The notes under the pieces were generated by a model. The model was not told where the DNA came from. It did not search any database and was given only the letters and a program-made list of their open reading frames with translations. DNA of 63,203 nt, the filler included, from Dimorphilus gyrociliatus (taxonomy: Eukaryota; Animalia; Annelida): assembly GCA_904063045.1 (NCBI GenBank). It is 6 parts of 6 records of this genome, joined end to end, with 100 filler letters (N's around TTAATTAATTAA, not from the genome) between each part and the next. Parts side by side here need not be neighbours in the genome. Positions count along the whole stretch, not along the records: positions 10,135 to 32,988 come from CAJFCJ010000112.1; 5 more parts are not named here. One strand, 5' to 3'. This document shows, piece by piece, positions 1,277-30,603 of this stretch; position 1 is the stretch's first letter; each line of letters starts with the position of its first letter. A program made the position numbers and the translations under genes.

Positions 1277-4200
1277 TATTTTTGCAAAATTTCAATCAAT
1301 TCTCTTCTTTCTCAAAATTCAGTAATTGAATGTAATGAAGCAAATTATAGTATTTTAATTTATGATACTTGCTATTATTTTTTTCAAACAATTGGAGGAG
1401 AGAAACCCATAGAAAAAATTGAAGAATTATGTAAAAAACAAAATTTAACATATAATGATATGCCTGGATCTGTATCTAATAATATTATTCCATTTTTACA
1501 CATAATGAGTGAATCATTCATAAAAAATTTCACAAAAAATTATAAATTTCAAAATGGTAATGATAAAGAAACATTCTTTTAAAGGTTATTAGTTAAAAAA
1601 ACATTTTTTTCTTTCAATTTTAGAGATTTATAGAAAAATTTTGAGGAAGAATGAAAAATCAGTTCAAATAACTAGCAATCTCTCAATGGTCAAAAAAATA
1701 AGGTGTTACTAGATATTAAATATTTGAAAAATCCATATAACTTCATATAAAAAAAAAAATAGAAATGTAATGATAACATTAAGAACAGAATGACAGCTTA
1801 CTATCTGTTTCTTAAATCTGGACTTACCAGGGAAGTGGCAGAGATCCCTTATGATTGTTTTCATCTTAAAATTCAGATATTCCCTGAAAGTCCTATGTTT
1901 CTTAAAAATGTTCTATTTATTAGTTGTGGAAAGGTGATGATGAGAAATTATATCTGTCTTAAACTACCAATTGTAAATGTAGTAAAAATAATTTCTGTTT
2001 ATACAATCAATTCAAAACTATTTCAAGAATTAAAAAGTGTTACTTTAAGAACTAAAGATAAATTTGACTGTCCACCAAAAGCTTTTCTTTGTAAATCTGA
2101 TGAACTTTGTATTGCTAGTGTCCATCTTTGTGATGGATATTATGATTGTCCTTCCAAAGAAGATGAAGAGAATTGCCCTAATATCCAATCTGATTACTTT
2201 CAGTGCTTTAATTCCTTTAAAAAAATTCATTATAATCATTTTTGCAACTTTATCTCTGATTGTTCAGATGGTTCTGATGAAATGTTTTGTGGTATGTACA
2301 TATTTTTGTTTTATAGATAATAATTCACTATTACAAATTATAAATAACAAAAGAAAGAGATGCTTGTGACAAAGAATATCTTAGGTATGGTTAATATAGA
2401 TAAAGAGAGATCAGAAAAAATCACTATAATTTTCAAAGGGATAGACATACAGAGAGAGAGAAAGATAATGAGTGAGTAATGGTGAAAGCGAGAGGTTGAA
2501 AGAGAGATAATGAGTAAGAAAAACAAGGAAAGAAAGTAGTTGAGATAGTAAATAAGAGAGGAAGGAGGATAGGTGATTTATGGAGAGAGCCAGACAGAGT
2601 AAAAGATAGAAAGACGGATTTTTCCAACTTTCTTGAAAAGGTTTAAATCCTTATATATCTAAAATAATCTTTGTATAAAATAGCAAATGTTCAAATGGGC
2701 AGTGTATATTAAACAGTTTTTTTGGAGATAATGAAAGAAATTGTTTTGATTCAAGTGATGAAGATTTTAACTATGTTTTGAAAAATAATCTTACTAACAG
2801 TAAAAATTTCAAGAAAGATTTGCTTTTGACAAAAATTAATTCTAATAATTTTCTATAGAAAATGAAATATATTGGTGTGATGGCAAAATAATTCATAAGG
2901 ATTCACTTTGTGATTTTAAAAAAGATTGTTCAACAGAGAAAGATGAGAATCAGGAAATCTGTACTTCATCTTCAAAATTAAAATCAATGATATACACTAC
3001 ATGCTTTGCAAATGTTTCAAGAAACACATGTAAAATAAAATATAATTCACTTGGTGAATTTAGAACAAAGCTACAATGGCCTTTCCTTGACCTTGGTCGC
3101 TGCAATTTAAACAAGTGTAATCTTGGAGAATATCTCTGCTATAGCAGATTTTGTATATCAATTGAACAATTTTGTGATGGCATAAAACATTGTTTCCATG
3201 GTGATGATGAATCTGACTGTGGTGACTATAAATTTCTAAATGTTTAAAACATAAATAAAGCAATGATGTTTTTCTGAAGAAAGTATAAAGATAAGTGGAT
3301 TTTTCAAATGCCAAAATGAAAATAGATTTCTACAACATGATAAAATTTGCAATAAGATTATTGATTGTCAATTTGGAACTGATGAAATGAATTGTATTAA
3401 ACTAGATAATTTTCCATCATATTGTACTCAGGAATATTCTTTTGATGTCAAATGTCATACACAGAGCAATTCTCAAATTTTAATATCATTTAACCAAACA
3501 TCAATTAAGAAACTATCACTCAACGGAAATTTTCAACTAGTACACATAAACTCATCTAAAAATTTAATATCATTGGAGATTTTAAATAGTAATATAGATA
3601 GCTTTAGTTTTAAAAATTTCCTAAATTTAGTATCAATTTCAATCAAAAATTCAAATTTTCAATTTGTAAAAAATGACTGTAAATCAAAAATATTACAATA
3701 TCTAAATTTATCCTTTAATCCAATAGAAAATGTACAAATTTTAGAAAATTTTCAATCAAAAGCATTGAAAGTTTTAGATATTTCATATACAAAAATTGAA
3801 TATTTAAATCTGAATACAACAAATACATTTAAAAATCTGTTGGTATTAAAACTTACAAACTGCAATATTAAAAATGTTGATGAATATTTTTTCAAGTTCT
3901 TCAAAAATCTTTTGGAATTACATTTAAATAATACAAACTATCCATCAAAACAATCATATTTTATTTCTAAAAATCTGATTAGAATTCAAAAAATTTATAA
4001 TACTCACTTTAAACTTTGTTGTTTTACTTGGAAACTAATGACAAGTAAAGTGTTATGCCTACCATCACCAAGAGGTTATGAAACATGTACAACCTTATTG
4101 AGTACATACTTAGTTAAAATTCTACTTTGGTTTTATGGATTAATTGGTATTGTAGCAAATCTGAGTGCAATAGCTATTTTTTGCTTTCAAACAAAAAAAT

Positions 4201-10134: not shown

Positions 10135-13100
10135 AAGTATAATTGTTTTCATAGACATTGAAGAAGATTTGAGCCCATCACATATCACTTTAAAGCCATT
10201 CCCCATGTTACTATTCCATGAGAAATCAACATTCTCCAATGCTGAACAGTGTTTAAATGTTTCTCCTAAACTTTGAGCTTGTTCATCATTCAAATCACAC
10301 CCATCAAGTGTAATTGTTTTCATAGACATTGAAGAAGATTTGAGTCCAACACATATCACTTTAAAGCCATTCCTCATCTTTCTATTACGTGAGAAATCAA
10401 CATTCTCCAATGCTGAATAGTATTTAAATGTTTCTCCTAAACTTTGAGCTTGTTCATCATTCAAATCACACCCACTAAGATTAATTGTTTTCATAGACAT
10501 TGAAGAAGATTTGAGCCCATCACATATACCTTTAAAGCCATTTCCCATGTTACTATTCCCTGAGAAATCAACATTCTCTAATGCTGAACAGTGTTTAAAT
10601 GTTTCTCCTAAACTTTGAGCTTGTTCATCATTCAAATGACACCCATCAAGTTAATTATTTTCAGAGACATTGAAGAAGATTTGAGTCCAACACATATCAC
10701 TTTAAAGCCATTCCTCATCTTCTATTATATGAGAAATCAACATTGTCCAATGCTGAACAGTGTTTAAATGTTTCTCCTAAACTTTGAGCTTGTTTATCAT
10801 TCAAATCACACCAACCAAGATTAATTGTTTTCATAGACATTGAAGAAGATTTGAGCCCATCACATATCACTTTAAAGCCATTCCACATCTTTCTATTACA
10901 TGAGAAATCAACATTCTCCAATGCTGAACAGTGTTTAAATGTTTTTCCTAAACTTTGAGCTTGTTCATCATTCAAATCACACTCACCAAGTTTAATTGTT
11001 TTCATAGACATTGAAGAAGATTTGAGCCCATCACATATCCCTTTAAAGCCATTCCGCATCTTTCTATTACATGAGAAATCAACATTCTCCAATACCGAAC
11101 AGTGTTTAAATGTTTCTCCTAAACTTTGAGCTTGTTTATCATTCAAATCACACCAACCAAGATTAATTGTTTTCATAGACATTGAAGAAGATTTGAGCCC
11201 ATCACATATCACTTTAAAGCCATTCCGCATCTTTCTATTACGTGAGAAATCAACATTCTCCAATGCTGAACAGTGTTTAAATGTTTCTCCTAAACTTTGA
11301 GCTTGTTTATCATTCAAATCACACCAACCAAGATTAATTGTTTTCATAGACATTGAAGAAGATTTGAGCCCATCACATATCCCTTTAAAGCCATTCCGCA
11401 TCTTTCTATTACATGAGAAATCAACATTCTCCAATGCTGAACAGTGTTTAAATGTTTCTCCTAAACTTTGAGCTTGTTTATCATTCAAATCACACCAACC
11501 AAGATTAATTGTTTTCATAGACATTGAAGAAGATTTGAGCCCATCACATATCACTTTAAAGCCATTCCGCATCTTTCTATTACATGAGAAATCAACATTC
11601 TCCAATACCGAACAGTGTTTAAATGTTTCTCCTAAACTTTGAGCTTGTTCATCATTCAAATCACACCAACCAAGATTAATTGTTTTGATAGACATTGAAG
11701 AAGATTTGAGCCCATCACATATCCTTTTAAAGCTATTCCCCGTGTTTTCATTAAATCTGAAATCAACATCCTCCAATGCTGAACAGTGTTTAAATGTTTC
11801 TCCTAAACTTTGAGCTTGTTCAGCATTGAAATCACACCAACCAAGATTAATTGTTTTCATAGACATTGAAGAAGATTTGAGCCCATCACATATCCCTTTA
11901 AAGCCATTCCCCATGTTTTTATTCAATGACAAATCAACATTCTCCAATTCTGAACAGTGTTTAAATGTTTCTCCTATACTTTGAGCTTGTTCATCATTCA
12001 AATCACACTCACCAAGTTTAATTATTTTCAGAGACATTGAAGAAGATTTGAGTCCAACACATATCACTTTAAAGCCATTCCCCATGTTACTATTCCATGA
12101 GAAATCAACATTCTCCAATGCTGAACAGTGTTTAAATGTTTCTCCTAAACTTTGAGCTTGTTCATCATTCAAATCACACCCACTAAGATTAATTGTTTTC
12201 ATAGACATTGAAGAAGATTTGAGTCCAACACATATCACTTTAAAGCCATTCCTCATCTTTCTATTACGTGAGAAATCAACATTCTCCAATGCTGAATAGT
12301 ATTTAAATGTTTCTCCTAAACTTTGAGCTTGTTCATCATTCAAATCACACCCACTAAGATTAATTGTTTTCATAGACATTGAAGAAGATTTGAGCCCATC
12401 ACATATACCTTTAAAGCCATTTCCCATGTTACTATTCCCTGAGAAATCAACATTCTCTAATGCTGAACAGTGTTTAAATGTTTCTCCTAAACTTTGAGCT
12501 TGTTCATCATTCAAATGACACCCATCAAGTTTAATTATTTTCAGAGACATTGAAGAAGATTTGAGTCCAACGGGGTCGGGTGTGAACGTACCTGGGTGCG
12601 AACGTACCCGGGTGCGAACGTACCCTGGGCGGGTGCGAACGTACCTGGGTACGTTCGCACCCTATTTTTATATTTATTTTATTTTGAATTTTTGAATAAA
12701 CATGTACATTGACACCCTTTTTTCCTTCTGTTCCTTCATTATATATTTGTTAATATATTGATTTGATAGAATGCAGATATTAAATAGAATACATATCCAT
12801 CAATATTAAATTACTACTTTAAAAGAAAATGTTGTTGAAAGTGAAATAGCAGCCATTTTAATAGTGATAGTTTTATTAAATAAACTTTCACTTGGAATAT
12901 TTATCCTTGCAAAAGTAAAGCTATATTTACTGAATAAATTTGGACAAAGTTCTTCTTGGAAGCTTCAACAGAAGTGAGTATTTATATCTAATCATTGAGA
13001 TTGTTGATTCATGATATTTTGATGTAATATACTATCTTCAATTGTGAAAAAGCTGAATATTTTTCATAAATAAAATTTCAGCCATTTTGAATATTTGGAA

Positions 13101-16100
13101 AGGAAATTTATTGATAACTGGAAATATTTTTAGATAACCATCTACATTTGATTGAAGATTAAAAAATGGCTTTCAAATGTCACAATTGTCATTCAACAAT
13201 TTATGGAAGGCAAAAATATTTGAAATGCAGCCTTTGTAAGAATCTTATTCATAGGAAATGCACAGGTATGTAACTCTTTAATCAGCTTTCATGTAATTAT
13301 ATTTTTTAACATATTCTTATAGAAACACATAACATACCAATTTGCAAACCTTGTAACAAAAGAAAATGTACTGTCATGCTCAAGAAGTTAACTAATCTGG
13401 AAATTCATCAATTCAAAGTAAATTCTGAAGAAAGCTTTATTGATGAAAGAAATAAGATTGCTGCAGTTGAGGAATCAATATTGGAGGATGAAAATCATGT
13501 TCTTTCAGAATGCCAATCAATGGACCTAGACTCTTTGGAGGAAGTTGAAGAGAATGCTGAAGAATATTGTGAATCATCCACAAAAAGTGATTTTGAGATT
13601 GTAAAAGGAGGAAGTAGAAAGGGACATGACATTTTACTGAATGATGGATATTCTTTTGTTGTTAAACATAAAACACCATCAAGTACTATTTGGGTGTGCA
13701 GTGTGAGAAGTAAGAAGAAAAGATGTGTGGCCAGAATAAGACAAAATGGAAATTTATTTCTCAAAGGCAATTTGGAACATAATCACAACAGAAAAAAGAA
13801 TTTAGAAGTGGATATTAAAGTGAAAACAGATTTGAAAATTGTTTGCAGAAGTGATAATCAAACATCTGGAAGAAGCATTGCTGAAAAAGTTCTTCTATCC
13901 TATGAACCCAATGCAACTTGTCTTCCTGATATCAACTATTTGAAGAGAATGGCAAACTCAAATAGACAAAAGTTTAGGCCAGTGGAACCTAAAGTGTACA
14001 ACTTTAATTTAGATGAAACATTTTTGCCTGATGAATTTTTGCAGAAAGATATTTGTGAAAATGGAGAAAGAATTTTAATCTTTGCAACAAACCATCAGCT
14101 GAATTTATTATCAAAATCCAACTGTTGGTACATTGATGGTACTTTCAAGATTGTAAAAGAACCATTTTATCAACTTGTCACTATTCACTCATTTGTTAAG
14201 AAGAGTGGTGATATGAAGCAAGTTCCTCTTGTTTTTATTTTTCTGACTTCAAAGCATACCAAAGCATACTTACAAGCATTTCAAGTAAATATTTCATATT
14301 ATCTCTTCAAAAGTGATGATAAATAAAGTTGCTTTTTTGTAGCATATCAACAATCTTATCAATGATTTTCATCCAAAAGAATTACAATGGATTTTGAAAA
14401 AGGACTATGGAAAGCATTATCAAAAGTATATCCCCTCACTGAATTTCAAGGTTGTGTATTTCATTTCACACAAGCAGTATACAGGAAAATACAAGTCAGT
14501 TACATTCAAATATATATAACATTATCTATTAAATAACTTATATTATTGAATAGGCTCTTGGCTATGTAAAGAAATACAAAGAAAAAGGAAATGATTGGAA
14601 AGATTTCAGAAAATTGATGGCTCTGCCATTCTTGCCAGCACATATTATTCAACCAACATTTGACAGCATAAATGCAGAACTTTGTGAAAAAAATAGATTT
14701 TTGGACCTGCTGCAATACTTCCAAACAAACTGGATCAAAAATAAATTATGGAAACCAAATAACTGGTCAGTTTTTGGTTTGTCTATTAGGACCAATAATG
14801 ATTGTGAAGGATGGCATCAAAGAATGAATAGTAAGCTGCCTGCTAAAGGTTCTTTTTACATGCTGGTTGATGAGCTAAAAAAAGAGTCTGAGTTGATTGC
14901 AGTTTATGAGAAATTACTGTCAGAAAAAAGGATTTACAAACATCAAAAGAAAAAGTATATTGACATCCAAAAGAAAATTTTTGATTTATGGGATGATTTC
15001 AAGTTGAACAAATTGACATCAATTGATCTATTAATGCAGACATCCCATATCTACTCTCCAGCATAAATATCATTTGTCAAGCTTTATTGTTTTTTAGTAT
15101 AATATTTAGTCTTTTAAATACATACTTTTAGATTTATAGCTAAATCTTTTATTCAAAAATTCAAAAATAAAATAAATATAAAAATAGGGTGCGAACGTAC
15201 CCAGGTACGTTCGCACCCGCCCAGGGTACGTTCGCACCCGGGTACGTTCACACCCAGGTACGTTCGCACCCCAACTCGAGTCCAACACATATCACTTTAA
15301 AGCCATTCCTCATCTTTCTATTATATGAGAAATCAACATTGTCCAATGCTGAACAGTGTTTAAATGTTTCTCCTAAACTTTGAGCTTGTTTATCATTCAA
15401 ATCACACCAACCAAGATTAATTGTTTTCATAGACATTGAAGAAGATTTGAGCCCATCACATATCACTTTAAAGCCATTCCACATCTTTCTATTACATGAG
15501 AAATCAACATTCTCCAATGCTGAACAGTGTTTAAATGTTTTTCCTAAACTTTGAGCTTGTTCATCATTCAAATCACACTCACCAAGTTTAATTGTTTTCA
15601 TAGACATTGAAGAAGATTTGAGCCCATCACATATCCCTTTAAAGCCATTCCCCATGTTACTATTCTCTGAGAAATCAACATTCTCCAATGCTGAACAGTG
15701 TTTAAATGTTTCTCCTATACTTTGAGCTTGTTCATCATTCAAATCACACTCACCAAGTTTAATTATTTTCAGAGACATTGAAGAAGATTTGAGTCCAACA
15801 CATATCACTTTAAAGCCATTCCCCATGTTACTATTCCATGAGAAATCAACATTCTCCAATGCTGAACAGTGTTTAAATGTTTCTCCTAAACTTTGAGCTT
15901 GTTCATCATTCAAATCACACCCACTAAGATTAATTGTTTTCATAGACATTGAAGAAGATTTGAGTCCAACACATATCACTTTAAAGCCATTCCTCATCTT
16001 TCTATTACGTGAGAAATCAACATTCTCCAATGCTGAATAGTATTTAAATGTTTCTCCTAAACTTTGAGCTTGTTCATCATTCAAATCACACCCACTAAGA

Positions 16101-19100
16101 TTAATTGTTTTCATAGACATTGAAGAAGATTTGAGCCCATCACATATACCTTTAAAGCCATTTCCCATGTTACTATTCCCTGAGAAATCAACATTCTCTA
16201 ATGCTGAACAGTGTTTAAATGTTTCTCCTAAACTTTGAGCTTGTTCATCATTCAAATGACACCCATCAAGTTTAATTATTTTCAGAGACATTGAAGAAGA
16301 TTTGAGTCCAACACATATCACTTTAAAGCCATTCCTCATCTTTCTATTATATGAGAAATCAACATTGTCCAATGCTGAACAGTGTTTAAATGTTTCTCCT
16401 AAACTTTGAGCTTGTTTATCATTCAAATCACACCAACCAAGATTAATTGTTTTCATAGACATTGAAGAAGATTTGAGCCCATCACATATCACTTTAAAGC
16501 CATTCCACATCTTTCTATTACATGAGAAATCAACATTCTCCAATGCTGAACAGTGTTTAAATGTTTTTCCTAAACTTTGAGCTTGTTCATCATTCAAATC
16601 ACACTCACCAAGTTTAATTGTTTTCATAGACATTGAAGAAGATTTGAGCCCATCACATATCCCTTTAAAGCCATTCCCCATGTTACTATTCTCTGAGAAA
16701 TCAACATTCTCCAATGCTGAACAGTGTTTAAATGTTTCTCCTAAACTTTGAGCTTGTTCATCATTCAAATCACACCAACCAAGATTAATTGTTTTGATAG
16801 ACATTGAAGAAGATTTGAGCCCATCACATATCCCTTTAAAGCTATTCCCCGTGTTTTTATTAAATCTGAAATCAACATCCTCCAATGCTGAACAGTGTTT
16901 AAATGTTTCTCCTAAACTTTGAGCTTGTTCATCATTCAAATCACACCAACCAAGATTAATTGTTTTCATAGACATTGAAGAAGATTTGAGCCCATCACAT
17001 ATCACTTTAAAGCCATTCCGCATCTTTCTATTACATGAGAAATCAACATTCTCCAATACCGAACAGTGTTTAAATGTTTCTCCTAAACTTTGAGCTTGTT
17101 CATCATTCAAATCACACCAACCAAGATTAATTGTTTTGATAGACATTGAAGAAGATTTGAGCCCATCACATATCCCTTTAAAGCTATTCCCCGTGTTTTT
17201 ATTAAATCTGAAATCAACATCCTCCAATGCTGAACAGTGTTTAAATGTTTCTCGTAAACTTTGAGCTTGTTCAGCATTGAAATCACACCAACCAAGATTA
17301 ATTGTTTTCATAGACATTGAAGAAGATTTGAGCCCATCACATATCCCTTTAAAGCCATTCCCCATGTTTTTATTCAATGACAAATCAACATTCTCCAATT
17401 CTGAACAGTGTTTAAATGTTTCTCCTATACTTTGAGCTTGTTCATCATTCAAATCACACTCACCAAGTTTAATTGTTTTCATAGACATTGAAGAAGATTT
17501 GAGCCCATCACATATACCTTTAAAGCCATTTCCCATGTTACTATTCCCTGAGAAATCAACATTCTCCAATGCTGAACAGTCTTTAAATGTTTCTCCTAAA
17601 CTTTGAGCTTGTTCATCATTCAAATCACACTCACCAAGTTTAATTGTTTTCATAGACATTGAAGAAGATTTGAGCCCATCACATATCCCTTTAAAGCCAT
17701 TCCCCATGTTACTATTCTCTGAGAAATCAACATTCTCCAATGCTGAACAGTGTTTAAATGTTTCTCCTAAACTTTGAGCTTGTTCATCATTCAAATCACA
17801 CCCATCAAGTGTAATTGTTTTCATAGACATTGAAGAAGATTTGAGTCCAACACATATCACTTTAAAGCCATTCTGCATCTTTCTATTACATGAGAAATCA
17901 ACATTCTCCAATGCTGAACAGTGGTTAAATGTTTCTCCTAAACTTTGAGCTTGTTCATCATTCAAATCACACCCACTAAGATTAATTGTTTTCATAGACA
18001 TTGAAGAAGATTTGAGTCCAACACATATCACTTTAAAGCCATTCCTCATCTTTCTATTACGTGAGAAATCAACATTCTCCAATGCTGAATAGTATTTAAA
18101 TGTTTCTCCTAAACTTTGAGCTTGTTCATCATTTAACTGACACCAATTAAGATTAATTGTTTTCATAGACATTGAAGAAGATTTGAGTCCATCACATATC
18201 CCTTTAAAGCCATTCCTCATGTTTCTATTACATGAGAAATCAACATTCTCCAATGCTGAACAGTGTTTAAATGTTTCTCCTAAACTTTGAGCTTGTTCAT
18301 CATTTAACTGACACCAATTAAGATTAATTGTTTTCATAGACATTGAAGAAGATTTGAGTCCATCACATATGACTTTAAAGCCATTCCCCATGTTACTATT
18401 ACATGAGAAATCAACATTCTCCAATGCTGAACAGTGTTTAAATGTTTCTCCTAAACTTTGAGCTTGTTCATCATTTAACTCACACTGGGCAAGCTTAATT
18501 GTTTTCATAGACATTGAAGAAGATTTGAGTCCATCACATATCACTTTAAAGCCATTCCCCATGTTACTATTCCATGATAAATCAACATTCTCCAATGCTG
18601 AACAGTGTTTAAATGTTTCTCCTAACCTTTGAGCTTGTTCTTCATTTAACTCACACCTACCAAGATTAATTGTTTTCAATGAGAATGAAGAAGATTTGAG
18701 TCCATCACATATCCCTTTAAAGCCATTTCCCATGTTTTTATTCCATGAGAAATCAACATTCTCCAATGCTGAACAGTGTTTAAATGTTTCTCCTAAACTT
18801 TGAGCTTGTTCATCATTTAACTCACACTGGGCAAGCTTAATTGTTTTCATAGACATTGAAGAAGATTTGAGTCCATCACATATCACTTTAAAGCCATTCC
18901 CCATCTTACTATTCCATGATAAATCAACATTCTCCAATGCTGAACAGTGTTTAAATGTTTCTCCTAAGCTTTGAGCTTGTTCATCATTTAACTCACACCA
19001 GGCAAGGTTAATTGTTTTCATAGACATTGAAGAAGATTTGAGTCCATCACATATCCCTTTAAAGCCATTTCCCATGTTTTCATTCCCTGAGAAATCAACA

Positions 19101-20103
19101 TTCTCCAATGCTGAACAGTGTTTAAATGTTTCTACTAGAGATTGAGCTTGGTCATCATCCAAATCACACCCATGAAGTTTAATTGTTTTGATAGAGTTTA
19201 AAGAAGATTTAAGCCCATCGCATATGTCTTTAAAACTGTTTCCCATGTGGTTGTTTTTTGATAGGTTAACATATTTTAATGATGCACATTTTTTTAAGTT
19301 TTTACCTAATATGTTTGAATTTTGACTATTTAAGTTACAATCTACAATCACAATATGGCTTAAGGTATGTTTAAATGAGTCGAAATTAAAATATGTATGA
19401 GCTTTTTTATAACTTTCAAATATTAAAGTTTTCATTTTGGTACATTTTCCTAGAAGTTCAGGCAGAGTTCTTTGCTGTTTTTCAAAGTTGGTGTAAGATT
19501 TAATATTAAATATCTCCATTGTTTGGCACAATATTTCAAAAACATCATTTAACGTTTCTTCATAATTTGCACTATTTTTATATTATATAATTCTACTGGA
19601 AAATGACACATGGTAACAAATTTTTTTTTCAATGCCCATTTTAAGCACTCCAAGGTGTTTTTGTTCAAGTTGGCAATCGCACTTTCATCAACTGTCAGTT
19701 TTGCTCCTGTGGCATTGAAAGAAACTTGCAGTTTTTCATTACTGAAAGCTTTAATCTGAATAACATTTGATGTTGAGTTATTATCAAAATATGAATGGAG
19801 TGATAAATCTTTGGATATATAACTGTAATAGTCCAAAAAGAATTTGTTTGTGAGATTTATTATTGAGCTATCTTGTATAACCAATTTTTTAAACTGGTAA
19901 TGCTCCCTTTTAAATTTTAAAACATTAAGAAATTTGTCCAAATCAATTGCAGAGACAATTTTGTTTTTCAGAATTATATCATTCAGATTATGGTGTCTTT
20001 CAATATATTTTAGTGATGCCTCTTTGTAAAATATTTCTGAATTGTATGATATATCTGTTAAATTTGTTAATTGATTATTCCAAATGTCACTTGAATCAAC
20101 CAA
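10135..20103 (-). CDS. Giant RNI-like (NLR-type) LRR protein with about 38 tandem 56-aa units, interrupted by a MULE
   Basis: ORFs 19549-20103, 15248-19531, 10715-12550 and 10087-10635 join after removing MULE-A (12572-15277 plus one TSD copy) and three 1-nt indels (T5 run 19575-19579; single-T losses near 10720 and 10651). Unit: KTIxLxxCxLNDEQAQSLGETFKHCSALENVDFSxNxxMxNGFKxICxGLKSSSMSM. No NACHT domain is visible. Confidence 0.9.
12572..15277 (+). mobile_element. MULE-A: complete Mutator-like (Phantom-type, FLYWCH) DNA transposon
   Basis: Exact 9-bp TSD GAGTCCAAC at 12563-12571 and 15278-15286. TIRs of about 130 bp made of GGGTGCGAACGTACC sub-repeats plus an AT-rich inner part. Internal transposase gene. 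Confidence 0.97.
13166..15066 (+). CDS. PHD-FLYWCH-MULE DDE transposase (MULE-A)
   Basis: Exons 13166-13265, 13323-14284, 14343-14494, 14554-15066. PHD CHNC..CSLC..H..C..CKPC; FLYWCH GYSF..WVCS..C..HNH; catalytic IDGTFK, MDFE, GCVFH (CxxH), RTNNDCEGWH. One 1-nt deletion in the A run at 14375-14378. Confidence 0.92.
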
Positions 20104-20239
20104 TTGGTTTGGTATTTATTACTAGAAATTTCTAATTTCTCAATTTGCATTTTTGATAGTATACCACTTTTACCATAATTCTTTTTTTTGATGAAAACTT
20201 TAATATTATGTACAATCAAATATGTAATATTAGTTGATG

Positions 20240-20640
20240 TTATCAATGCCAGCAGTTCTTTAAAATCATTTCATTNCCCTTCTTTCTTTTTAAATTCTGA
20301 ACTGTAGCCAAGATCCTTTAAATAGAACAATAAAGGTAGATTACATTTCTATACTGTTCAATATTGTTGCTAACCTGAATTTTTCTGAATATTGCTTGTG
20401 ACCAATGAAAAGAACAACCAACCATTAAAACATCTGGCCAAGTATCTCTTATACCTTTCCAAATTGCTTTCTCATAGTCCAAAACAGTTTTCTTCGCAAA
20501 GATGTTACCAATTAGCTCATTTACAGCCTAAATACACAGATTATCTTTGATTTAAGTATTTTTACAAATAACTTATGGTACAACTTTAATTATGGCTGAT
20601 AGAAAACATTCTCAGGCTGACAGAAAATATTCCCAATAAG
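20240..20640 (-). mobile_element. Deleted MULE-C-like transposase fragment
   Basis: Reverse strand reads VLDYEKAIWKGIRDTWPDVLMVGCSFHWSQAIFRKIQ, intron, DLGYSSEFKKKEG, homologous to 50322-50560 including intron sequence. Decayed GACAGAAAA sub-repeats at about 20597-20630. Confidence 0.75.
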
Positions 20641-21808
20641 ATGGAGAATGGGCTATAGTAATAAAACTCATTAGAGGTAAGTTGAAAATTTATTATTTGT
20701 CGTTTTAAAAGCTATGTTATAATTTATTTTTTAATGTGACATTGTATTTTTATAATAAAATCTTTGTGTAACATTCTAACCAAAAATTTGACAAATTTTA
20801 TGTGTTTTTTATCTTTTTTTATTAATTTTACATTGTAAGGCTTGTGGTTATATTATCAATGTATATATATATATCATGCAATAATTCTGATTCTTCTCAT
20901 AAATTCACTGTCAGTCTAATTAAAGGCAAATGTTGTCTCTTTTGAAATACCAAAAAAACTGATAAACCTTACTCAGGGTTAAAACATTATGATTTATACA
21001 AGAGATATTTCAAAATAGTCATTCTTAACTTTCATGTAATAAACACTTGTATTTTGAATTACCATTCATAAAAAGAGTTCCATCTATCTTCATTTTTATT
21101 TTTTACAGTGTCCACATTTATACAATTATCTGTTATTATAAAAAAATCACAAAATAATATCATGGGAAAATATTAAAGTTGCATTTTGGTTCAAAAGATG
21201 AAATATAAAGCAAAACATAAATGTAATTTTCTCAGTTAATATTTTTTTAAATATTATTGACAAAATTCTCCACCAGGCGTCATATTATACATGACAACAC
21301 CTCTAAAAAATGCTAGTTCAATACTACTTACCTATACCAGAACTGGCCTTATGAATATAATGGTACAATAGGTAAGATTTCTTCAGCAAATTTCTTAACT
21401 AAACATTTTTAACATTTGTAAAATTTTGAGTACTTTTTAAGAATAACTTCAAGAAACATTTTGGTATAGGATTCTTCTGTAGAATTCAGTTTTCTGACAA
21501 TTAAAAACTAATATCAATTTTCATAAATGACTTAGTGTAAAATGTAACAAATGTAAAACACTTTTCAAAGTAATTAGTTTACATTTTTTTGCACCATCAT
21601 AAAAAAAGCTATTTGAAGATCATTCAGCAGAATAAAATAATTAGTTTTAAAAAATTTATTACAACAGACTTAACTAATATTCTGAAACATCAGTTAAAAA
21701 CACAGCAAACTGTAGCCATCCAACATGTGAAAAATATACTAAATAGATAAAAGTTGACAGAAGCAAATAATATTTAAAACAGATACAGATAACTTCAACA
21801 AAAAAGAT

Positions 21809-23236
21809 GTGGATTTCAAAATTATGTGTACTGGACACAAAATCTCTTCAAACTCTTTAAACACACTTGAAAATATTAATTTCTCAGACAATAGAAGCAT
21901 GAGAAATGGATTTAAAGTAATATGTGATGGATTCAAATCTTCTGCAAACACTTTGAAAATAATAAGGTTTTTTTACTATGAATTAAATGATGAACAAGCT
22001 AAATGTTTGGGAGAAACATTGAAAGAATGCTCAACACTTGAAGAAATTAATCTCTCTTGCAATAGCAGAATGGGAAATGGATTTAAAGAAATATGTGATG
22101 GACTCAAATCTTCTTCAAACACTTTGAAAATAATTAGTTTTGATAGCTGTGAATTAAATGATGAACAAGCTAAATTTCTGGGAGAAATGTTTAAAGAGTG
22201 CTCAACACTTGAAGATATTGATTTGTCCTGTAATGAAAATATGGCAAATGGATTTAAAGTAATATGTGATGGACTCAAATCTTCTTCGAATACTTTGAAA
22301 ATAATTAGGTTTTGTAGATGTTCATTAAATGATGAAGAAGCTAAATTTCTGGGAGAAATGTTTAAAGAGTGCTCAACACTTGAAGATATTGATTTGTCCT
22401 GCAATGAAAATATGGCAAATGGATTTAAAGTAATATGTGATGGACTCAAATCGTCTTCAAATACTTTGAAAATAATTAGGTTTTGCTATGAATTAAATGA
22501 TGAACAAGCTAAATGTTTTGGAGAAACATTGAAAGAGTGCTCAACACTTGAAAATATTAATTTCTCTGACAACAACAATATGGCAAATGGATTTAAAGTA
22601 ATATGTGATGGACTCAAATCTTCTTCAAACACTTTGAAAATAATTAGGTTCTGTAGATGTGCATTAAATGATGAACAGGCAAAATGTCTAGGAGAAACAG
22701 TTAAAGAGTGTTCAACACTTGAATATATTAATTTGTCCTGTAATAAAGATATGGCAAATGGATTTAAAATAATATGTGATGGACTCAAATCTTCTTCAAA
22801 CATTTTGAAAATAATTAGTTTTTGTTACTGTGCATTAAATGATGAACTAGCTAAATGTTTGGGAAAAACATTTAAAGAGTGTTCAACACTTGAAGATATT
22901 GATCTCTCTTTTAATAGCAGCATGGGAAATGGATTTAAAGAAATATGTGATGGACTCAAATCTTCTTCAAACACTTTGAAAATAATTAGTTTTGATAGCT
23001 GTGAATTAAATGATGAACAAGCTAAATTTCTGGGAGAAATGTTTAAAGAGTGTTCAACACTTGAAGATATTGATTTGTCTGGTAATAAAGATATGGCAAA
23101 TGGATTTAAAGAAATATGTGATGGACTCAAATCTTCTTCAAATACTTTGAAAATAATTAATTTTTGTTACTGTGAACTAAATGATGAACTAGCTAATTAT
23201 ATCAGAGAAACATTAAAAGTGAAATTACTACTGTAG
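21809..23236 (+). CDS. RNI-like LRR protein, paralog of the giant LRR gene (about eight 56-aa units)
   Basis: 475-aa ORF of units LKIIxFxxCxLNDEQAKxLGExxKECSTLExIxLSxNxxMxNGFKxICDGLKSSSNT. Stop-ridden sequence at about 21300-21800 weakly resembles the N-terminal region of the other LRR gene. Confidence 0.88.
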   Translation: MDFKIMCTGHKISSNSLNTLENINFSDNRSMRNGFKVICDGFKSSANTLKIIRFFYYELNDEQAKCLGETLKECSTLEEINLSCNSRMGNGFKEICDGLKSSSNTLKIISFDSCELNDEQAKFLGEMFKECSTLEDIDLSCNENMANGFKVICDGLKSSSNTLKIIRFCRCSLNDEEAKFLGEMFKECSTLEDIDLSCNENMANGFKVICDGLKSSSNTLKIIRFCYELNDEQAKCFGETLKECSTLENINFSDNNNMANGFKVICDGLKSSSNTLKIIRFCRCALNDEQAKCLGETVKECSTLEYINLSCNKDMANGFKIICDGLKSSSNILKIISFCYCALNDELAKCLGKTFKECSTLEDIDLSFNSSMGNGFKEICDGLKSSSNTLKIISFDSCELNDEQAKFLGEMFKECSTLEDIDLSGNKDMANGFKEICDGLKSSSNTLKIINFCYCELNDELANYIRETLKVKLLL

Positions 23237-25102
23237 TTTTTTATAGAGATTAGTTGATTTAATTCCTTAATTCCAATATTAAGATTTTTCAAAGAAAAAC
23301 CATACACATACATTTATCAGTTCTATTCTACCATAGTTATTGTCTAGTTTAAAAACTTGGTTTTATTGCAAATACAAGTTGAACAGGAAAAAGAAAATTC
23401 AGAGAATATTCCAGTTTTACAGCCAAAATCTTAGCTGGAAATTTTAATATAATAATAAGACAACATATTTGCTTACACTATTGCTCTAGGAAATATTTAG
23501 AAAATGTTTTCCCAAAAGTTCAAACAAGTTAAAAGAAATGAAAATTATGCTCATTTGGATAAAGATTAGGGTCACTCTTATTCAATTATTTGGGAAAAGG
23601 TTAGTTCCAACTTTTCCTCCCTTGTTATCAAATCCCTCTTCTTATGTCCTTGTTAGGTAAGGGTTCCAATTAGGGTGAGGTGAAAAAAAAATGTTTTTGT
23701 TTCTTATTGGACTAGTTATTGTTATACAATTGGACTGCTCTGGTCTTGCCAATTTATTCATTTACAGACAACAGTACTGGTTCTATGTGAACATTAAAAA
23801 CAGCTGTGCAGCCTTCACCATCCTAAGTTTGTCATATTTAAATGTTTAAGCCCATTTAATAGATGATTCTATTATTTTAACAATTTATAATTGAATGTTT
23901 ACAATTTGCAAAAATAATTGTCCCAATTGCCTTTTATCCTTAAATAATCTTGATATAAGCTACTTCTAAGAGCACAGTTGTGAATTGGCTTCAGGAAAAA
24001 CTTGAGTAACTGCTTTCCACAAGCCTACCTCAAGGTCCAATACAAAATTGTGCAGTTTTTTCTTCTTCATAACACTTTCTACTTCCTTAAAGAGCAGAAT
24101 AATTTTTTGTTTTATTTTAGCAAATTTTTTGAATTACTCACTCTTAAAACTTCCAAGTAGCGTTTCTTTTTTTTCCCCACTCATTAAGATAAACAAAAGT
24201 GGCTAAATTGTCCCCAACTGAATTATCCCCACATCGACTTCCATCAATTGTCATTGAAGATAGAATTAGATGATTAGAACATAGATGTACCAGCTTGTTG
24301 GCTCATTTTGCCAATGTATTCTTTGCCATAAAAGAAAAGTCATAATATCATTTTTTTTATCTATGCCTAAAATAGTTCAAACTACAAAATTTTTTTGTTT
24401 TTTGATCTTAACTTCTCTTATATTGAAAAAATGATCTATAAGTTTGACACTACTCATTACAGACACTATAGTTAAGGTCAAGTTTTTTTCTCATTTGAAT
24501 AATTAAAGCAATATATTTCTGTTGTTGTTTAATGATTCTACTACTAAATATATTAACCATTTAAAGTAGAATAAGAAGTATAAAAAATTATTGAGAAGAA
24601 GCCATAAAATCATTTAAATTCTTCTAACATTTCAAATCAAAAATTCATATTTTAGATCACTTTTCAAAATTGATGTTTCATTTTCAATTTTTTCAGAAGA
24701 GCGAGAGAGCGAGACTACTTAAAGAATATATCCTGTTATTAACAGATAGAAAAGATATTCTCTTGAAATCTAGATATTTCCTTCAATGTATAACGTATTT
24801 TCAATCAATTTTTTTAAATCATTTTTTATCCTATTCTTAACATCATCTTCTTTTTAAAAGCTTTTTTTTAAATATATATCAAGAATTTATATCTATATAT
24901 GTGTTTGTAATGCTTAATATGTGCCTAAACTACTCAATGCTCTATCATACACTAAAGCAAACAGAAAGCTTTTAACATATTCTTTAATATTTAAAATAAA
25001 CTTCTTTTGATCAAAATTAAATCATGGATAATATGTATATATATATATATATTGACTGGTATAACTTGTGGTCTATCTATATATGGCAATTGTCAAGATA
25101 CT

Positions 25103-26011
25103 ATGAATTTAACTTTAGCTGGATTTTCTATTAAATATGATTTAGATGAAATGGAAAACATCATTCTACATATCATATCTTATACAATTATAATTTCTGG
25201 ATTAACACTAACAGCAATAGTTATTTTTCTTTTTTTAAAATTTGAGTCTGTTAGAGAATCCTGTGGATATTTTATTTTTTTCCTTATGCTGAATCATCTT
25301 TTATTACTCATAATATTTCTACTTGGAAATATACTTTATCTTTTGGGAAGACTTTTTAACCCTACTCCAACTCTATGTATTATCTCAATAGTAATTCCTG
25401 GTGTAGGAAATATTCTTTCTCAGATCAACTTTCTAGGCCTATTTGTTAGCAGATATTTGTCAATAAAATTTCCTTTTAAGTACAACTATTATTGTCATTC
25501 AAAGAATAAGATATTAATAACAATTCTTATAAATATCTTTGGTTTTTTGGTCTCTCTCTATTCTATCATAAAGCCTTATAAGAAATCAACAATCTGCTAT
25601 GGTTACATTTCAGTAGATATTGATTCTTTTATTGTATTTTTATTCTTTTTCTTTGGTCCAATTCTACCATCTGTAACATTTCACTTTCTCACATTAAAAT
25701 TGGCTAAAAAGCATGCAAGATCTATGGAAAATCAATTACAATCTTCTCAATCCATCTCTAAATCTTCTAAGGCAACATTTTGTAAATTAATCTTGGTTAT
25801 CCTATTATGGATATGCTATATTGGTATTTTTAGTACTATATCGCTAAATGTATATGTTTCATTCAAAAAATTGATTATTATGCAATATATTATACTTTTT
25901 CCAACTATTACTAATTCACTTATAGTACTCATCAGTAATTCTCATATAAAACTTATTTTGAAAAATTGTTGTAAATTGAAAATACATGCTACCAATAACA
26001 GCAACAGTTAA
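25103..26011 (+). CDS. Intronless class A (rhodopsin-like) orphan GPCR, chemoreceptor-like
   Basis: Seven hydrophobic segments, N-terminal NLT sequon, TM3 C...SRYLSIKFPFKY (DRY-like) motif. Likely ATG at 25103 within ORF 25007-26011. Confidence 0.85.
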   Translation: MNLTLAGFSIKYDLDEMENIILHIISYTIIISGLTLTAIVIFLFLKFESVRESCGYFIFFLMLNHLLLLIIFLLGNILYLLGRLFNPTPTLCIISIVIPGVGNILSQINFLGLFVSRYLSIKFPFKYNYYCHSKNKILITILINIFGFLVSLYSIIKPYKKSTICYGYISVDIDSFIVFLFFFFGPILPSVTFHFLTLKLAKKHARSMENQLQSSQSISKSSKATFCKLILVILLWICYIGIFSTISLNVYVSFKKLIIMQYIILFPTITNSLIVLISNSHIKLILKNCCKLKIHATNNSNS

Positions 26012-27050: not shown

Positions 27051-29130
27051 TTAAAAATCTACTGATATATCACACAGAGACAATTTTGGAATGTCTGACA
27101 ACTCATATATATGTATAAGAATATGTAAATTATCTAATCCTTTATTGCTTCTTGCTTCACATTCAAATGGAAAATGAAAATAGGAATTTTTCTCAATCAT
27201 TGTCTGCTGCTGTTTACATAACTTGCCATCAGCATTATCCAACTTGATGAAGATATTAACATTAAAATCTCCCAAAAGAGTATCAGTTTTTTTTAATACA
27301 ACTTTAGAAAAAGTACTATTGCTTCTAAAGCCATTTCCATTTGACAGTTTGTAATGAAAGAGACTGTTTCTTTCCTTTAGTGGTGTGCATGTATAAATAT
27401 GTGGATCAATTGCTTTATAATATTCATTATTAGTGCAGTCGTGATAAAAGTTTTCCAGTTTTATTCCATCTGTAAAAAAAATACAGTAAAATGTAGGTTT
27501 ACAAACTATCATTATAATATTTGTATACCTTCATCAACAACCCTCACTCCATTTTTTATATTTGACAAACCATTTTTAAACAAGATTTGTCTTGGTTTGA
27601 TAGATATGGCTGATGAGATAGTTGCCAATCTAGAAATACCATATTCCATACCCAAACCAAATGTTATATGACTTTCTGACATTTCTAGCCAGAAACTTTT
27701 CCAATCATCACAACTAAACAATGGTAAAGAACTTATTTGTATTGAAGGTTGATTAGTTACTTCCATTGATGAAATTTTGTTGTTGTTTATAATTTCATTG
27801 AGCTTTATAGTCAATTGGATTGATGTTTCACTTTTAAAGGCAATTATAAAAGATGAACAATCATCTGTTTGACCTAGATTTACACCTAAAATTTGAAATT
27901 TTATAGCCCTAAAATTCTGGTAAACATAAGGTGATAGATGATAGACAACAAAGTTTTCTGACTGAATTAAATATATCAATTTTGAAGAATCTATATAGAG
28001 AGATTATTTTATTAAACTTTAACCTTGACCTTTTATCCTAATATTAATCTTACCTTTTACAAAAACACTCACATATTGAAATCCAACATTTTTGTCAATG
28101 TAAACATCCATAATGGTAAGTTTTAGTCCATGTTCCATTCCAAAAGAATTTGTATAATTAAAGCAATGTATCTGGTCAGCATTTGGAAGATTTACTGTCT
28201 GATTAAATCCTGAACTCCATTCAACTCTAACAGTCTTAATTCTATTTGTAAATTGGTGTCTGTTTTTAAAAGTATAAAAATGGTGGATATAACATTAAAA
28301 ATGTATAGTATGATATTGATAATGATAAAATACCCATTTGATATGCATAGTAGTTTTGGTTCTGCAGGGAATGCTAATGCTACATCAATATAATGATTTA
28401 CACACGACCCTTTCAATGAGTCACTCACATCACAATTTGGACTCCAGGTTTTAGTTATGTCTCGGTCTAGTGCTTCGCTACATTCAAAAGTTGACCTTGA
28501 ACTTGATGCACTACAGCTAGCTCCTACATGTTTAAAAGCTGTGTTTGTAAGTTTATCTCCGTTGTGTACTATTGAAAAGTTTGATAAATAAAGGTAAATC
28601 AATAGGATTAGACAATAATCAATAGGAATATTTATTTTTTTCACAATATTCTCCTACCATTTTCATTCTCTAGTGCAAAAATAGATATATCATTAAACCC
28701 AATATTTCTTGTATTTCCAGACATATAGGACTCTGCTTCAAATTTTGCCTTAGATGAACTAGATCCATCGCCATCTTCAAGCAACAAACATGTTGTTAAA
28801 ATGTTAATGTGATAAATCCGGGTTGGATTAGTTCCCATGGTAACTTTAATGGCTGTCATCAATGATGAAGGGTCAACTAACCTCTGGGTAGTACAAAACT
28901 CTATTACATCATAGATCTTTGTAAAAGTAATCTCTATCCAATGTTGCTTGCAATTTGCATTTGAGCAGAGAGCTGCCCAATCATTGTAATCAATCCAGAA
29001 AGGTTTCAGGGCAAATTCACACTCAAAGTTATACTTTGCAGTTGGAAATGTGGAAGAACGTGTGCACATTGCCCCATTGGATTTTCTGGCTACATTAATT
29101 AGCTTACTGTCTCCTAACGTTGATAATAAA
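27051..29130 (-). CDS. Multi-exon putative secreted protein with two F5/8 type C (discoidin)-like domains and a farnesoic acid O-methyltransferase-like domain
   Basis: NVARKSNGAMCTRSS..QHWIEITFTKIYDV..; NTAFKHVGASCSASSS..TWSP..YIDVAL; FSCDDWKSFWLEMSESHITFGLG. A phase-1 intron at 28569-28657 joins two ORFs. Gene ends not resolved. Confidence 0.6.
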
Positions 29131-30515: not shown

Positions 30516-30603
30516 GAATACGACAGAAAACGGCCACAAATCAACAGAAAACGGCCCCAACTGGAACAGAAAACGGCCCCAACTGAGACAGAAAACAGCC
30601 ACA
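30516..30603 (+). repeat. Solo MULE terminus with four ACAGAAAACGGCC sub-repeats
   Basis: gaatacgacaGAAAACG start with the canonical 10-nt offset, abutting the LTR remnant. No partner end seen. Confidence 0.6.

Follow-up and report, generated by a model that had tools for sequence, protein, structure and literature searches.

The locus described here raises the question of what kind of gene carries at least 77 tandem leucine-rich repeats (LRRs), and of how repeats with a nearly invariant framework came to differ from one another at a few positions. It lies in a stretch of 63,203 nucleotides from the annelid Dimorphilus gyrociliatus (assembly GCA_904063045.1), made of six parts joined end to end and referred to below as the window. 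The piece from 10,135 to 32,988 comes from contig C112 (CAJFCJ010000112.1), and the array reaches the edge of this piece at 10135, where the contig runs on leftward; positions are those of the window unless a contig name precedes them. An earlier, sequence-only reading had described a giant LRR solenoid assembled from shuffled modules. We consider it likely that the array forms the C-terminal sensor of a NOD-like receptor (NLR), re-sorted by germline unequal exchange and diversified by selection on its face, in a copy that was then hit by a Mutator-like element (MULE).

The LRR array covers 10140-12569 and 15278-19248 (Tandem Repeats Finder: period 171 nt, 92% matches) and is encoded on the minus strand. 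Its unit of 57 amino acids (171 nt) joins two ribonuclease-inhibitor-type LRRs, a 28-residue LxxLxLxxCxL repeat (half A) and a 29-residue LxxVxFxxNxxM repeat (half B), in the consensus NGFKxICxGLKSSSMSMKTIxLxxCxLNDEQAQSLGETFKHCSALENVDFxxNxxMx. In coding order, a degenerate LRR pair (‘unit 0’, 19241..19375, read from the translation of open reading frame (ORF) 15248..19531) precedes the regular array. Units 1-23 and the first ten codons of unit 24 follow (15287..19240), delimited by the 171-nt period, the constant 57-residue spacing, the match to a ribonuclease inhibitor profile and an AlphaFold2 model; what remains of unit 24, together with units 25-37 and 22 residues of unit 38 at the piece edge, lies at 10135..12571, as read from the translation and the unit table. 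All three segments are on the minus strand. There are thus 37 full units, the degenerate one and the partial one, or at least 77 LRRs in view in an array cut by the piece edge. Once the intervening transposon is removed, the distance from one NGFK to the next is exactly 57 residues across 34 consecutive units, without a single indel. Twenty-seven of the 57 alignment columns are invariant in amino acid, in keeping with the near-invariant scaffold proposed from the sequence, and 28 of the 37 units are distinct, because blocks recur at 100% identity. The first estimate of about 38 units and 76 LRRs was close, but its period of 168 nt has to be replaced by 171. Likewise, the repeat placed at 10135-19260 is real but not uninterrupted, a MULE of 2,706 nt occupying 12572-15277. 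Nor does ‘one intronless exon’ describe the locus: in the assembly the array is split by this transposon, repeat debris lies where the NACHT part is expected, and two 1-nt deletions in runs of A (10721/10722 and 10650/10651) break the frame of the array. These two deletions may be assembly errors.

The fold of the array can be placed with some precision. A profile built from 17 paralog segments and run against the PDB with hmmsearch matched ribonuclease inhibitor (RI; E 1.7e-68) and NLRP14 (E 1.6e-55), and Pfam LRR_6 matched the array at E 1.8e-16; the PDB search with a single sequence returned no match at E<=1e-40, and porcine RI was aligned when the cut-off was 1e-15. In the AlphaFold2 model of six units (pLDDT 96, pTM 0.92), every repeat pairs a single short strand with a single helix, the strands occupying unit residues 19-21 and 47-49; Foldseek places this model on RI with TMq 0.82-0.83. 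By its 28/29 alternation, profile similarity and alpha/beta horseshoe the array belongs with the RI-like LRRs. HMMER aligns LKTLWLWECDIT of porcine RI with MKTIKLGECDLN of the array, so that the W-x-W of the porcine segment falls on unit positions 21 and 23; we take these tryptophans to be W257 and W259, which presumably contact RNase A. The variable sites were mapped to the face by RI homology and strand positions rather than by model coordinates, and on that basis the selected positions are predicted to match the ligand face of RI; the variable face may well bind a ligand. Matches to the Pfam families LAX, Filament_head, PMC2NT, DUF5444 and Erp_C, also obtained with the array, were rejected, no single stretch being over threshold and the scores accumulating over 23 identical repeats.

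The identity of the gene emerges from its paralogs. At C112:63094-67345, a single frame of 1,417 amino acids encodes a NACHT domain (Pfam E 1.3e-10, Walker A GEPGIGKS, Walker B LLLDGADE), then a linker, then the same LRR units; its N-terminal ~170 residues give a weak, below cut-off match to Pfam Death (E 0.024), and in a protein search only Dimorphilus gyrociliatus proteins match it well. In the locus under study the linker, or cap, between NACHT and LRRs is found directly upstream of the array, at 19376..20264 (minus strand), where tblastn recovers approximately residues 618 to ~910 of the intact paralog in three frames at 93-97% identity; this segment is 99% identical to its counterpart on contig C205 and 96% identical to that near 65k of C112. 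Across the genome there are at least 28 NACHT loci, several of them in open frames of 1,600-3,238 amino acids, and a gene on contig C38 has, in one unbroken frame, NACHT and 45 or more units. We read the array as an NLR sensor array because paralogs carry NACHT in the same open frame, and on sequence grounds it is best assigned to a lineage-specific NLR family whose LRR domains are very long. The role in innate immunity or recognition that had been suggested for it becomes plausible in this light, as the close paralogs are NACHT-LRR proteins, and it is in this qualified form that the suggestion stands.

This family suggests that the NLRs of D. gyrociliatus have expanded, a point that has so far gone unremarked. 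The species was reported to be without an NLR homolog in one comparative study, which recorded no NLR outside three annelids (PMC8476170), and in its text the genome paper goes no further than immune-related expansions that are locally duplicated, naming neither NLR nor NACHT (PMC7854359). The C38 gene (C38:147500-157400), that of DgyrCDS14440, is annotated with 1,148 amino acids against an open frame of at least 3,225-3,238, and a giant array seems to have been cut short in its gene model; DgyrCDS14440 itself is found at 100% identity in the genome, which rules out the ciliate or protist origin that AT-richness and long intronless frames could suggest. In the C38 array, ~9 units are diverged, and near-identical units, at least 36 of them, form higher-order blocks of three to four unit types. 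A fourth copy of the linker, at C112:41169-41667 (71% identity), contains several in-frame stops and is a decayed NLR pseudogene.

Variation among the units is concentrated at the face residues, as had been proposed. Entropy peaks at unit positions 52 (eight residues), 24, 23, 54, 57, 21, 5 and 26. All of the face pairs listed in the sequence-only reading are present, namely SG, GW, DG, GE, AW, AQ, NW and GR in half A, to which HG is to be added, and SG, SW, SC, SR, SE, SL, RF and SY in half B. Codons were assigned from the LRR motif, before counting, to the xxLxLxx face, the following loop or the scaffold that makes up the rest. The ratio of non-synonymous to synonymous diversity (piN/piS) is 2.1-2.7 for the face, 2.1-2.3 for the loop and 0.55 for the scaffold; face and loop combined give 2.47 (codon bootstrap 95% interval 1.31-5.32), values calculated from few synonymous differences and from units that recombine and are not independent. 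In the codon-level comparison that had been called for, face and loop codons thus lie above the scaffold (2.47 vs 0.55). The extra non-synonymous and synonymous states stand at 35:4 in face and loop and at 19:10 in the scaffold (Fisher p=0.03), and mean pairwise identity of the units is lower for amino acids (83.7%, over ~2,100 residues) than for nucleotides (92.4%). The columns without consensus across the 17 paralog segments are the same variable columns, and close paralogs add further face pairs (e.g., HG, YG, FR, HR, CR and TF). Taken as codon statistics, these data suggest that diversifying selection has retained substitutions at the face, the scaffold being conserved.

The units have also been shuffled. 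Every pairing of half-units claimed at the outset is seen (GW with RF, SC, SE, SY and SR; GE with SG, SL, SE and SC; SG with SR, SC and SW), but the pairings cannot be counted as independent, only 28 of the 37 units being distinct. Recombination below the level of the unit, also part of the original proposal, is well supported: a PHI-type permutation test on the 171-nt unit alignment gives p<0.0005, at least 12 recombination events (Rm) are required within that alignment, and nine units, unit 21 among them, are exact two-parent mosaics whose nearest single relative differs by 2-8 nt. At the level of whole blocks, six units (1,026 nt) are perfectly duplicated in tandem at 11950..16743 on the minus strand, where 16743-15691 equals 15717-11950 minus the transposon in an exact run of 1,053 nt at a lag of six units. 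Exact-repeat comparison reveals a third exact copy on the same strand, 747 nt long, at 10311..11055 (units 33.0-37.4), which contains the two 1-nt deletions, and five units recur within 100%-identical multi-unit blocks. The junction of the duplication is preserved in unit 21 (15820-15650), which joins the 5´ part of unit 27 to the 3´ part of units 9/15 without a mismatch and thereby brings a new pairing, GE/SE, from parents GE/SL and GW/SE. Such a chimera is the product expected of one unequal exchange. Public short reads were consulted as Logan contigs of four runs from two studies, placed on 14900-20700, the depth of which is uninformative on copy number; no joined or rearranged forms were seen among them. 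Re-pairing of half-units is therefore real, and its mechanism is germline unequal crossing-over or gene conversion within the tandem array. The parallel drawn with the cassettes of lamprey variable lymphocyte receptors (VLRs) and the repeat-variable diresidues (RVDs) of transcription activator-like effectors (TALEs) goes no further than analogy, the signatures, including the chimeric unit 21, being those of germline exchange. The first interpretation was right on recombination and on diversification focused on the face, and wrong in implying more than the standard dynamics of a tandem array.

Unit 24 is interrupted by a DNA transposon of the FLYWCH/MULE type (2,706 nt, 12572..15277), which lies on the plus strand, antisense to the LRR gene, and was recognized by its termini, target site, domains and dispersed copies. 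Its terminal inverted repeats are 123 nt long and 93% complementary, and the junction sequences show a 9-bp target-site duplication, GAGTCCAAC, at 12563..12571 on the left and 15278..15286 on the right. Inside are a FLYWCH zinc finger (Pfam E 4.4e-7), two pieces of the MULE transposase PF10551 (E 5.6e-5 and 5e-3, profile positions 2-51 and 68-98) and Transposase_mut PF00872 (E 1.5e-4, 21.2 bits vs a cut-off of 21). Long terminal inverted repeats, a 9-bp target-site duplication and a transposase domain together identify the element as a Mutator-like transposon. Removal of the transposon and one copy of the target-site duplication leaves a single open frame of 2,033 codons, and this restoration of the frame on clean excision argues that the array was intact when the element entered it, cleanly and very recently. 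Elsewhere in the genome, near-full-length copies at 99-100% identity number at least 18; the near-identity of the element to these dispersed copies dates the disruption to the very recent past. In the locus as assembled, a stop codon would end translation after 48 LRRs, nine codons inside the MULE. Splicing of the element as an intron through the one obvious GT...AG pair, with junctions read by eye, was set aside, as it would leave 31 extra nt, out of frame.

Other observations in the genome concern the same element. Contig C112, on which the decayed linker copy lies, holds three more copies. On contig C59, an NLR paralog (NACHT 70052-71920, linker 72047-72409) is followed, after 24 nt, by the same MULE in full length (72433-75139), and the protein annotated for this locus (DgyrCDS14643, C59:70052-75139) joins NACHT, MULE and FLYWCH domains. 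Insertions of MULEs into NLR genes seem to recur in D. gyrociliatus. A plus-strand paralog at C112:69800-70998 ends at the same MULE with a junction identical to window 15200-15400: the last ~90 nt of the ‘SYNRKMR-NGFKVICVGL’ unit together with the transposon show 0 mismatches and 36 gap columns in 1.1 kb, and units farther upstream in this paralog are only ~93% alike to those of the window. The inverted MULE copies at C112:69800-70998 and in the window flank a middle array segment, an arrangement, with its inverted junction at C112:69888, that may reflect a genuine inverted duplication, an inversion between the two elements, or a low-quality mis-join in the assembly.

The 5´ side of the locus bears on the state of this copy. 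At 19574 and again at 20077 the assembly lacks a T, in a run of T that is one letter longer in every covering short-read contig (from three to four runs); one such contig also carries a C at 19572 that is this copy's own and lacking in both paralogs. As the extra T is found in all covering contigs, the frameshifts at 19574 and 20077 are errors of the assembly consensus. A short intron between ORFs 19549..20103 and 15248..19531 was also considered, and is dispensable, the gap being explained by the missing T. Similar local frameshifts, e.g., ‘...GMALK*’, are seen in the paralog arrays on C112:63-70k and C205. Upstream of 20264, the expected position of NACHT is occupied by a patchwork of dispersed-repeat fragments (20265..21808, without strand assignment) found at 40+ places in the genome at 71-88% identity, in which 20318-20482 is a piece of a MULE-like ORF. 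In the four runs no contig bridges 20264/20265 and none is listed across 15277/15278; contigs matching this copy continue into NACHT-side sequence, through a 30-mer that also occurs at three other loci. The 5´ truncation is neither confirmed nor refuted by the short-read contigs. This copy is probably a recently disabled or truncated member of the family, rather than a working receptor with 77 LRRs.

Taken together, the evidence can be arranged into the following scenario. One gene of a NACHT-LRR family specific to the lineage of D. gyrociliatus would have this region as its C-terminal sensor array. Units would exchange out of register, by unequal crossing-over or gene conversion, such that the array grows and multi-unit blocks are duplicated; the same exchange would make chimeric units in which a new A face is joined to a new B face. 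Point substitutions at the predicted ligand-face residues and in the beta-alpha loop would be retained by diversifying selection, a mode that, by analogy, may be that of the LRR domains of plant resistance (R) genes and of fungal NLRs with high internal conservation (HIC). A very young MULE would then have entered unit 24, and the protein, if transcribed as assembled, would end after 48 LRRs. Several points weigh against this scenario, in addition to the small synonymous counts already mentioned. Residues 1-617 of the intact paralog, comprising NACHT, have no tblastn match upstream of 20264 in the assembly, and with this part absent and two 1-nt deletions in the array tail, a working full-length receptor is not demonstrated; none of the four public runs is recorded as RNA. 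The short-read contigs inside the array measure only 53-111 nt, leaving the order and number of units to an early assembly of PacBio continuous long reads with demonstrable indel errors at this very locus. Within the family, the A face of the giant C38 array is nearly invariant and variation lies mainly in the B-type loop, so that a hypervariable face is not uniform across the family.

The quality of the assembly invites another explanation, namely that the length of the array, its identical blocks and perhaps the boundary at 20264 and the transposon junctions are products of mis-assembly or over-polishing of a locus that is in reality shorter or rearranged. The assembly, of 78 Mb in 349 contigs, was built from PacBio reads with PBcR, Quiver and Pilon, followed by HaploMerger2 (PMC7854359); contig C112 measures no more than 97.7 kb and abounds in transposons, short-read contigs directly expose two indel errors, the nearby inverted copy of the transposon junction, with its gap columns and no mismatches, has the look of low-quality consensus, and the two junctions named above are the ones that contigs do not span. 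Such errors would, however, hardly keep the 57-residue register free of indels through 34 units. The duplicated blocks differ in their flanks and meet in precisely the chimera expected from one unequal exchange, the transposon sits in one of three block copies only, with a proper 9-bp target-site duplication, and independent paralogs on other contigs are also very long and intact, e.g., that on C38 with at least 3,225 residues. We therefore regard an artefact of this extent as unlikely, if the most serious of the competing explanations.

A biological alternative is that a decaying pseudogene is evolving under relaxed constraint. Surface positions of LRRs tolerate substitutions, and the variable sites could simply be the surface residues least bound by folding, such that no diversifying selection is needed. 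This would suit a copy that is interrupted by a transposon, is without NACHT in the assembly and is surrounded by repeat debris and array fragments. It predicts a piN/piS of about 1 everywhere, whereas the scaffold shows 0.55 and face plus loop about 2.5 with an interval that excludes 1; moreover, the frame is open over 2,033 codons once the transposon is taken out, the transposon is near-identical to its dispersed copies and the disruption hence very recent, and the two apparent frameshifts are assembly errors. We consider decay an improbable cause of the pattern. One might also imagine a programmed, VLR-like somatic or developmental assembly, with arrays that are without NACHT (the present one and that at 21809-23236) as donor cassettes. 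The circumstances in its favour are the orphan array fragments beside NLR genes and the existence of mosaic units, but unequal crossing-over accounts in full for the mosaics and block duplications, which the germline assembly already contains; intact paralogs on C112 (63094-67345) and C38 encode complete NACHT-LRR frames that require no joining, the absence of joined forms from the short-read contigs over 14900-20700 also speaks against it, and no link to a deaminase or recombinase was seen, though no search was aimed at one. To this possibility we attach very little weight. An NLR sensor array shaped by unequal exchange and selection thus remains the explanation that we prefer.

The surroundings of the array contain several further features. 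Head-to-head with the main gene, across the repeat debris, lies a separate and more diverged LRR array fragment of another paralog, with eight units on the plus strand (21809..23236; Tandem Repeats Finder 21863-23219, period 171, 86% matches), which ends in a natural stop and has no NACHT upstream; its face pairs are DS, CR and CY in one half and SD, SC, SF and SG in the other. On its antisense strand the repeat also gives rise, as a by-product, to periodic ORFs of 100-157 amino acids. An ORF of 334 amino acids that lies a few kb away from the NLR arrays (25007-26011, plus strand; 7tm_1 E 5.6e-9) encodes an apparently intronless G-protein-coupled receptor of the rhodopsin family. Two ORFs of 150-155 amino acids on the minus strand (27051-27979 and 28192-28644) belong to no clear family, their only match being a weak TRPM2-like one (E 0.0055), and near the contig end there is a short 22-nt tandem repeat of 3.8 copies within AT-rich sequence (30523-30603).

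The locus provides a concrete animal example of a NACHT-LRR gene of unusual length, in which the mechanism of unequal exchange can be read directly from the sequence. Hypervariable repeat arrays of high internal conservation have been examined in depth among fungal NLRs and plant R genes; those of animals are treated at survey level only (PMC13449251, section 12). For work on D. gyrociliatus there is also a practical message: the reference assembly and its gene models are unreliable at NLR loci, as is evident from the indel errors, from a 1,148-residue model within a 3,238-residue frame and from a fusion of NACHT with MULE and FLYWCH domains. One intriguing possibility, which we advance tentatively and with less confidence than the account of the single locus, is that the species maintains an animal counterpart of the HIC-NLR system of fungi, with ~30 or more NACHT-LRR genes whose near-identical RI-type arrays of up to ~90 LRRs are continually re-sorted by unequal exchange and whose binding surfaces diversify in populations. 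If so, array fragments without NACHT could act as donors in the exchange, and the diversity of binding surfaces would serve pathogen recognition or allorecognition, in a miniature annelid that has one of the smallest animal genomes and was reported to have no NLR homolog (PMC8476170).

How does the array compare with systems already described? The likeness to lamprey VLR cassettes and TALE RVD repeats, both modular repeats with few specificity residues per module, is conceptual only and involves no relation in sequence. VLRs are assembled somatically from flanking cassettes, whereas complete NACHT-LRR frames are present here in the germline, and TALE repeats are 34-residue modules that read DNA. 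The structural relatives are RI and the LRR domains of vertebrate NLRP/NLRC proteins, with which the array shares the alternating 28/29-residue A/B repeats (57 amino acids, 171 nt) and the LxxLxLxxC/N consensus, and RI and NLRP match it strongly in both profile and fold. LRRs number 15-16 in RI and are also far fewer in mammalian NLRs than the 77 or more found here; the repeats of RI and NLRPs have diverged over a long history, each 171-nt module forming an exon of its own, whereas the units of the array are 92% identical within one open frame.

In their mode of evolution, the LRRs of plant R genes match the array. These also experience diversifying selection on solvent-exposed residues, and intragenic unequal crossing-over alters the number and order of their LRRs, as is known from copy-number variation in Cf-2/Cf-5. 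Repeat shuffling in RPP5 is a further case (Noel et al., 1999, as cited in PMC13449251, section 12). The plant genes differ from the array in having 24-residue plant-specific LRRs, in being NB-ARC NTPases or extracellular receptors, and in their independent origin.

The mode of evolution also matches that of the fungal HIC NLRs, which carry near-identical WD40, ANK or TPR repeats, with few positively selected surface positions, repeat shuffling and associated transposons (PMC1805685; PMC4986451; PMC13449251). Like the array, the NACHT-WD40 proteins of Podospora anserina (HET-E/HET-D/NWD) combine membership of a NACHT family with long stretches of near-identical, superstructure-forming repeats, and shared with them are a small number of hypervariable positions on the predicted binding surface, the shuffling of repeats and the association with transposons. 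The fungal proteins, in contrast to the RI-type LRRs of the array, have no LRRs according to one study (PMC4986451), and their hosts are fungi whereas the host of the array is an animal. The criteria given for HIC in these sources are at least 85% identity over at least 100 amino acids (PMC4986451) or Psim of at least 0.7 (PMC13449251), and the mean amino-acid identity of the array, 83.7%, falls just under the former, which counts against a strict assignment. The array nevertheless displays both hypervariable, selected face positions and unequal exchange within the array, two features of HIC repeats. According to section 12 of a 2026 survey, HIC NLRs occur in animals as well (PMC13449251), and the array of D. 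gyrociliatus would thus be of a kind that is already known.

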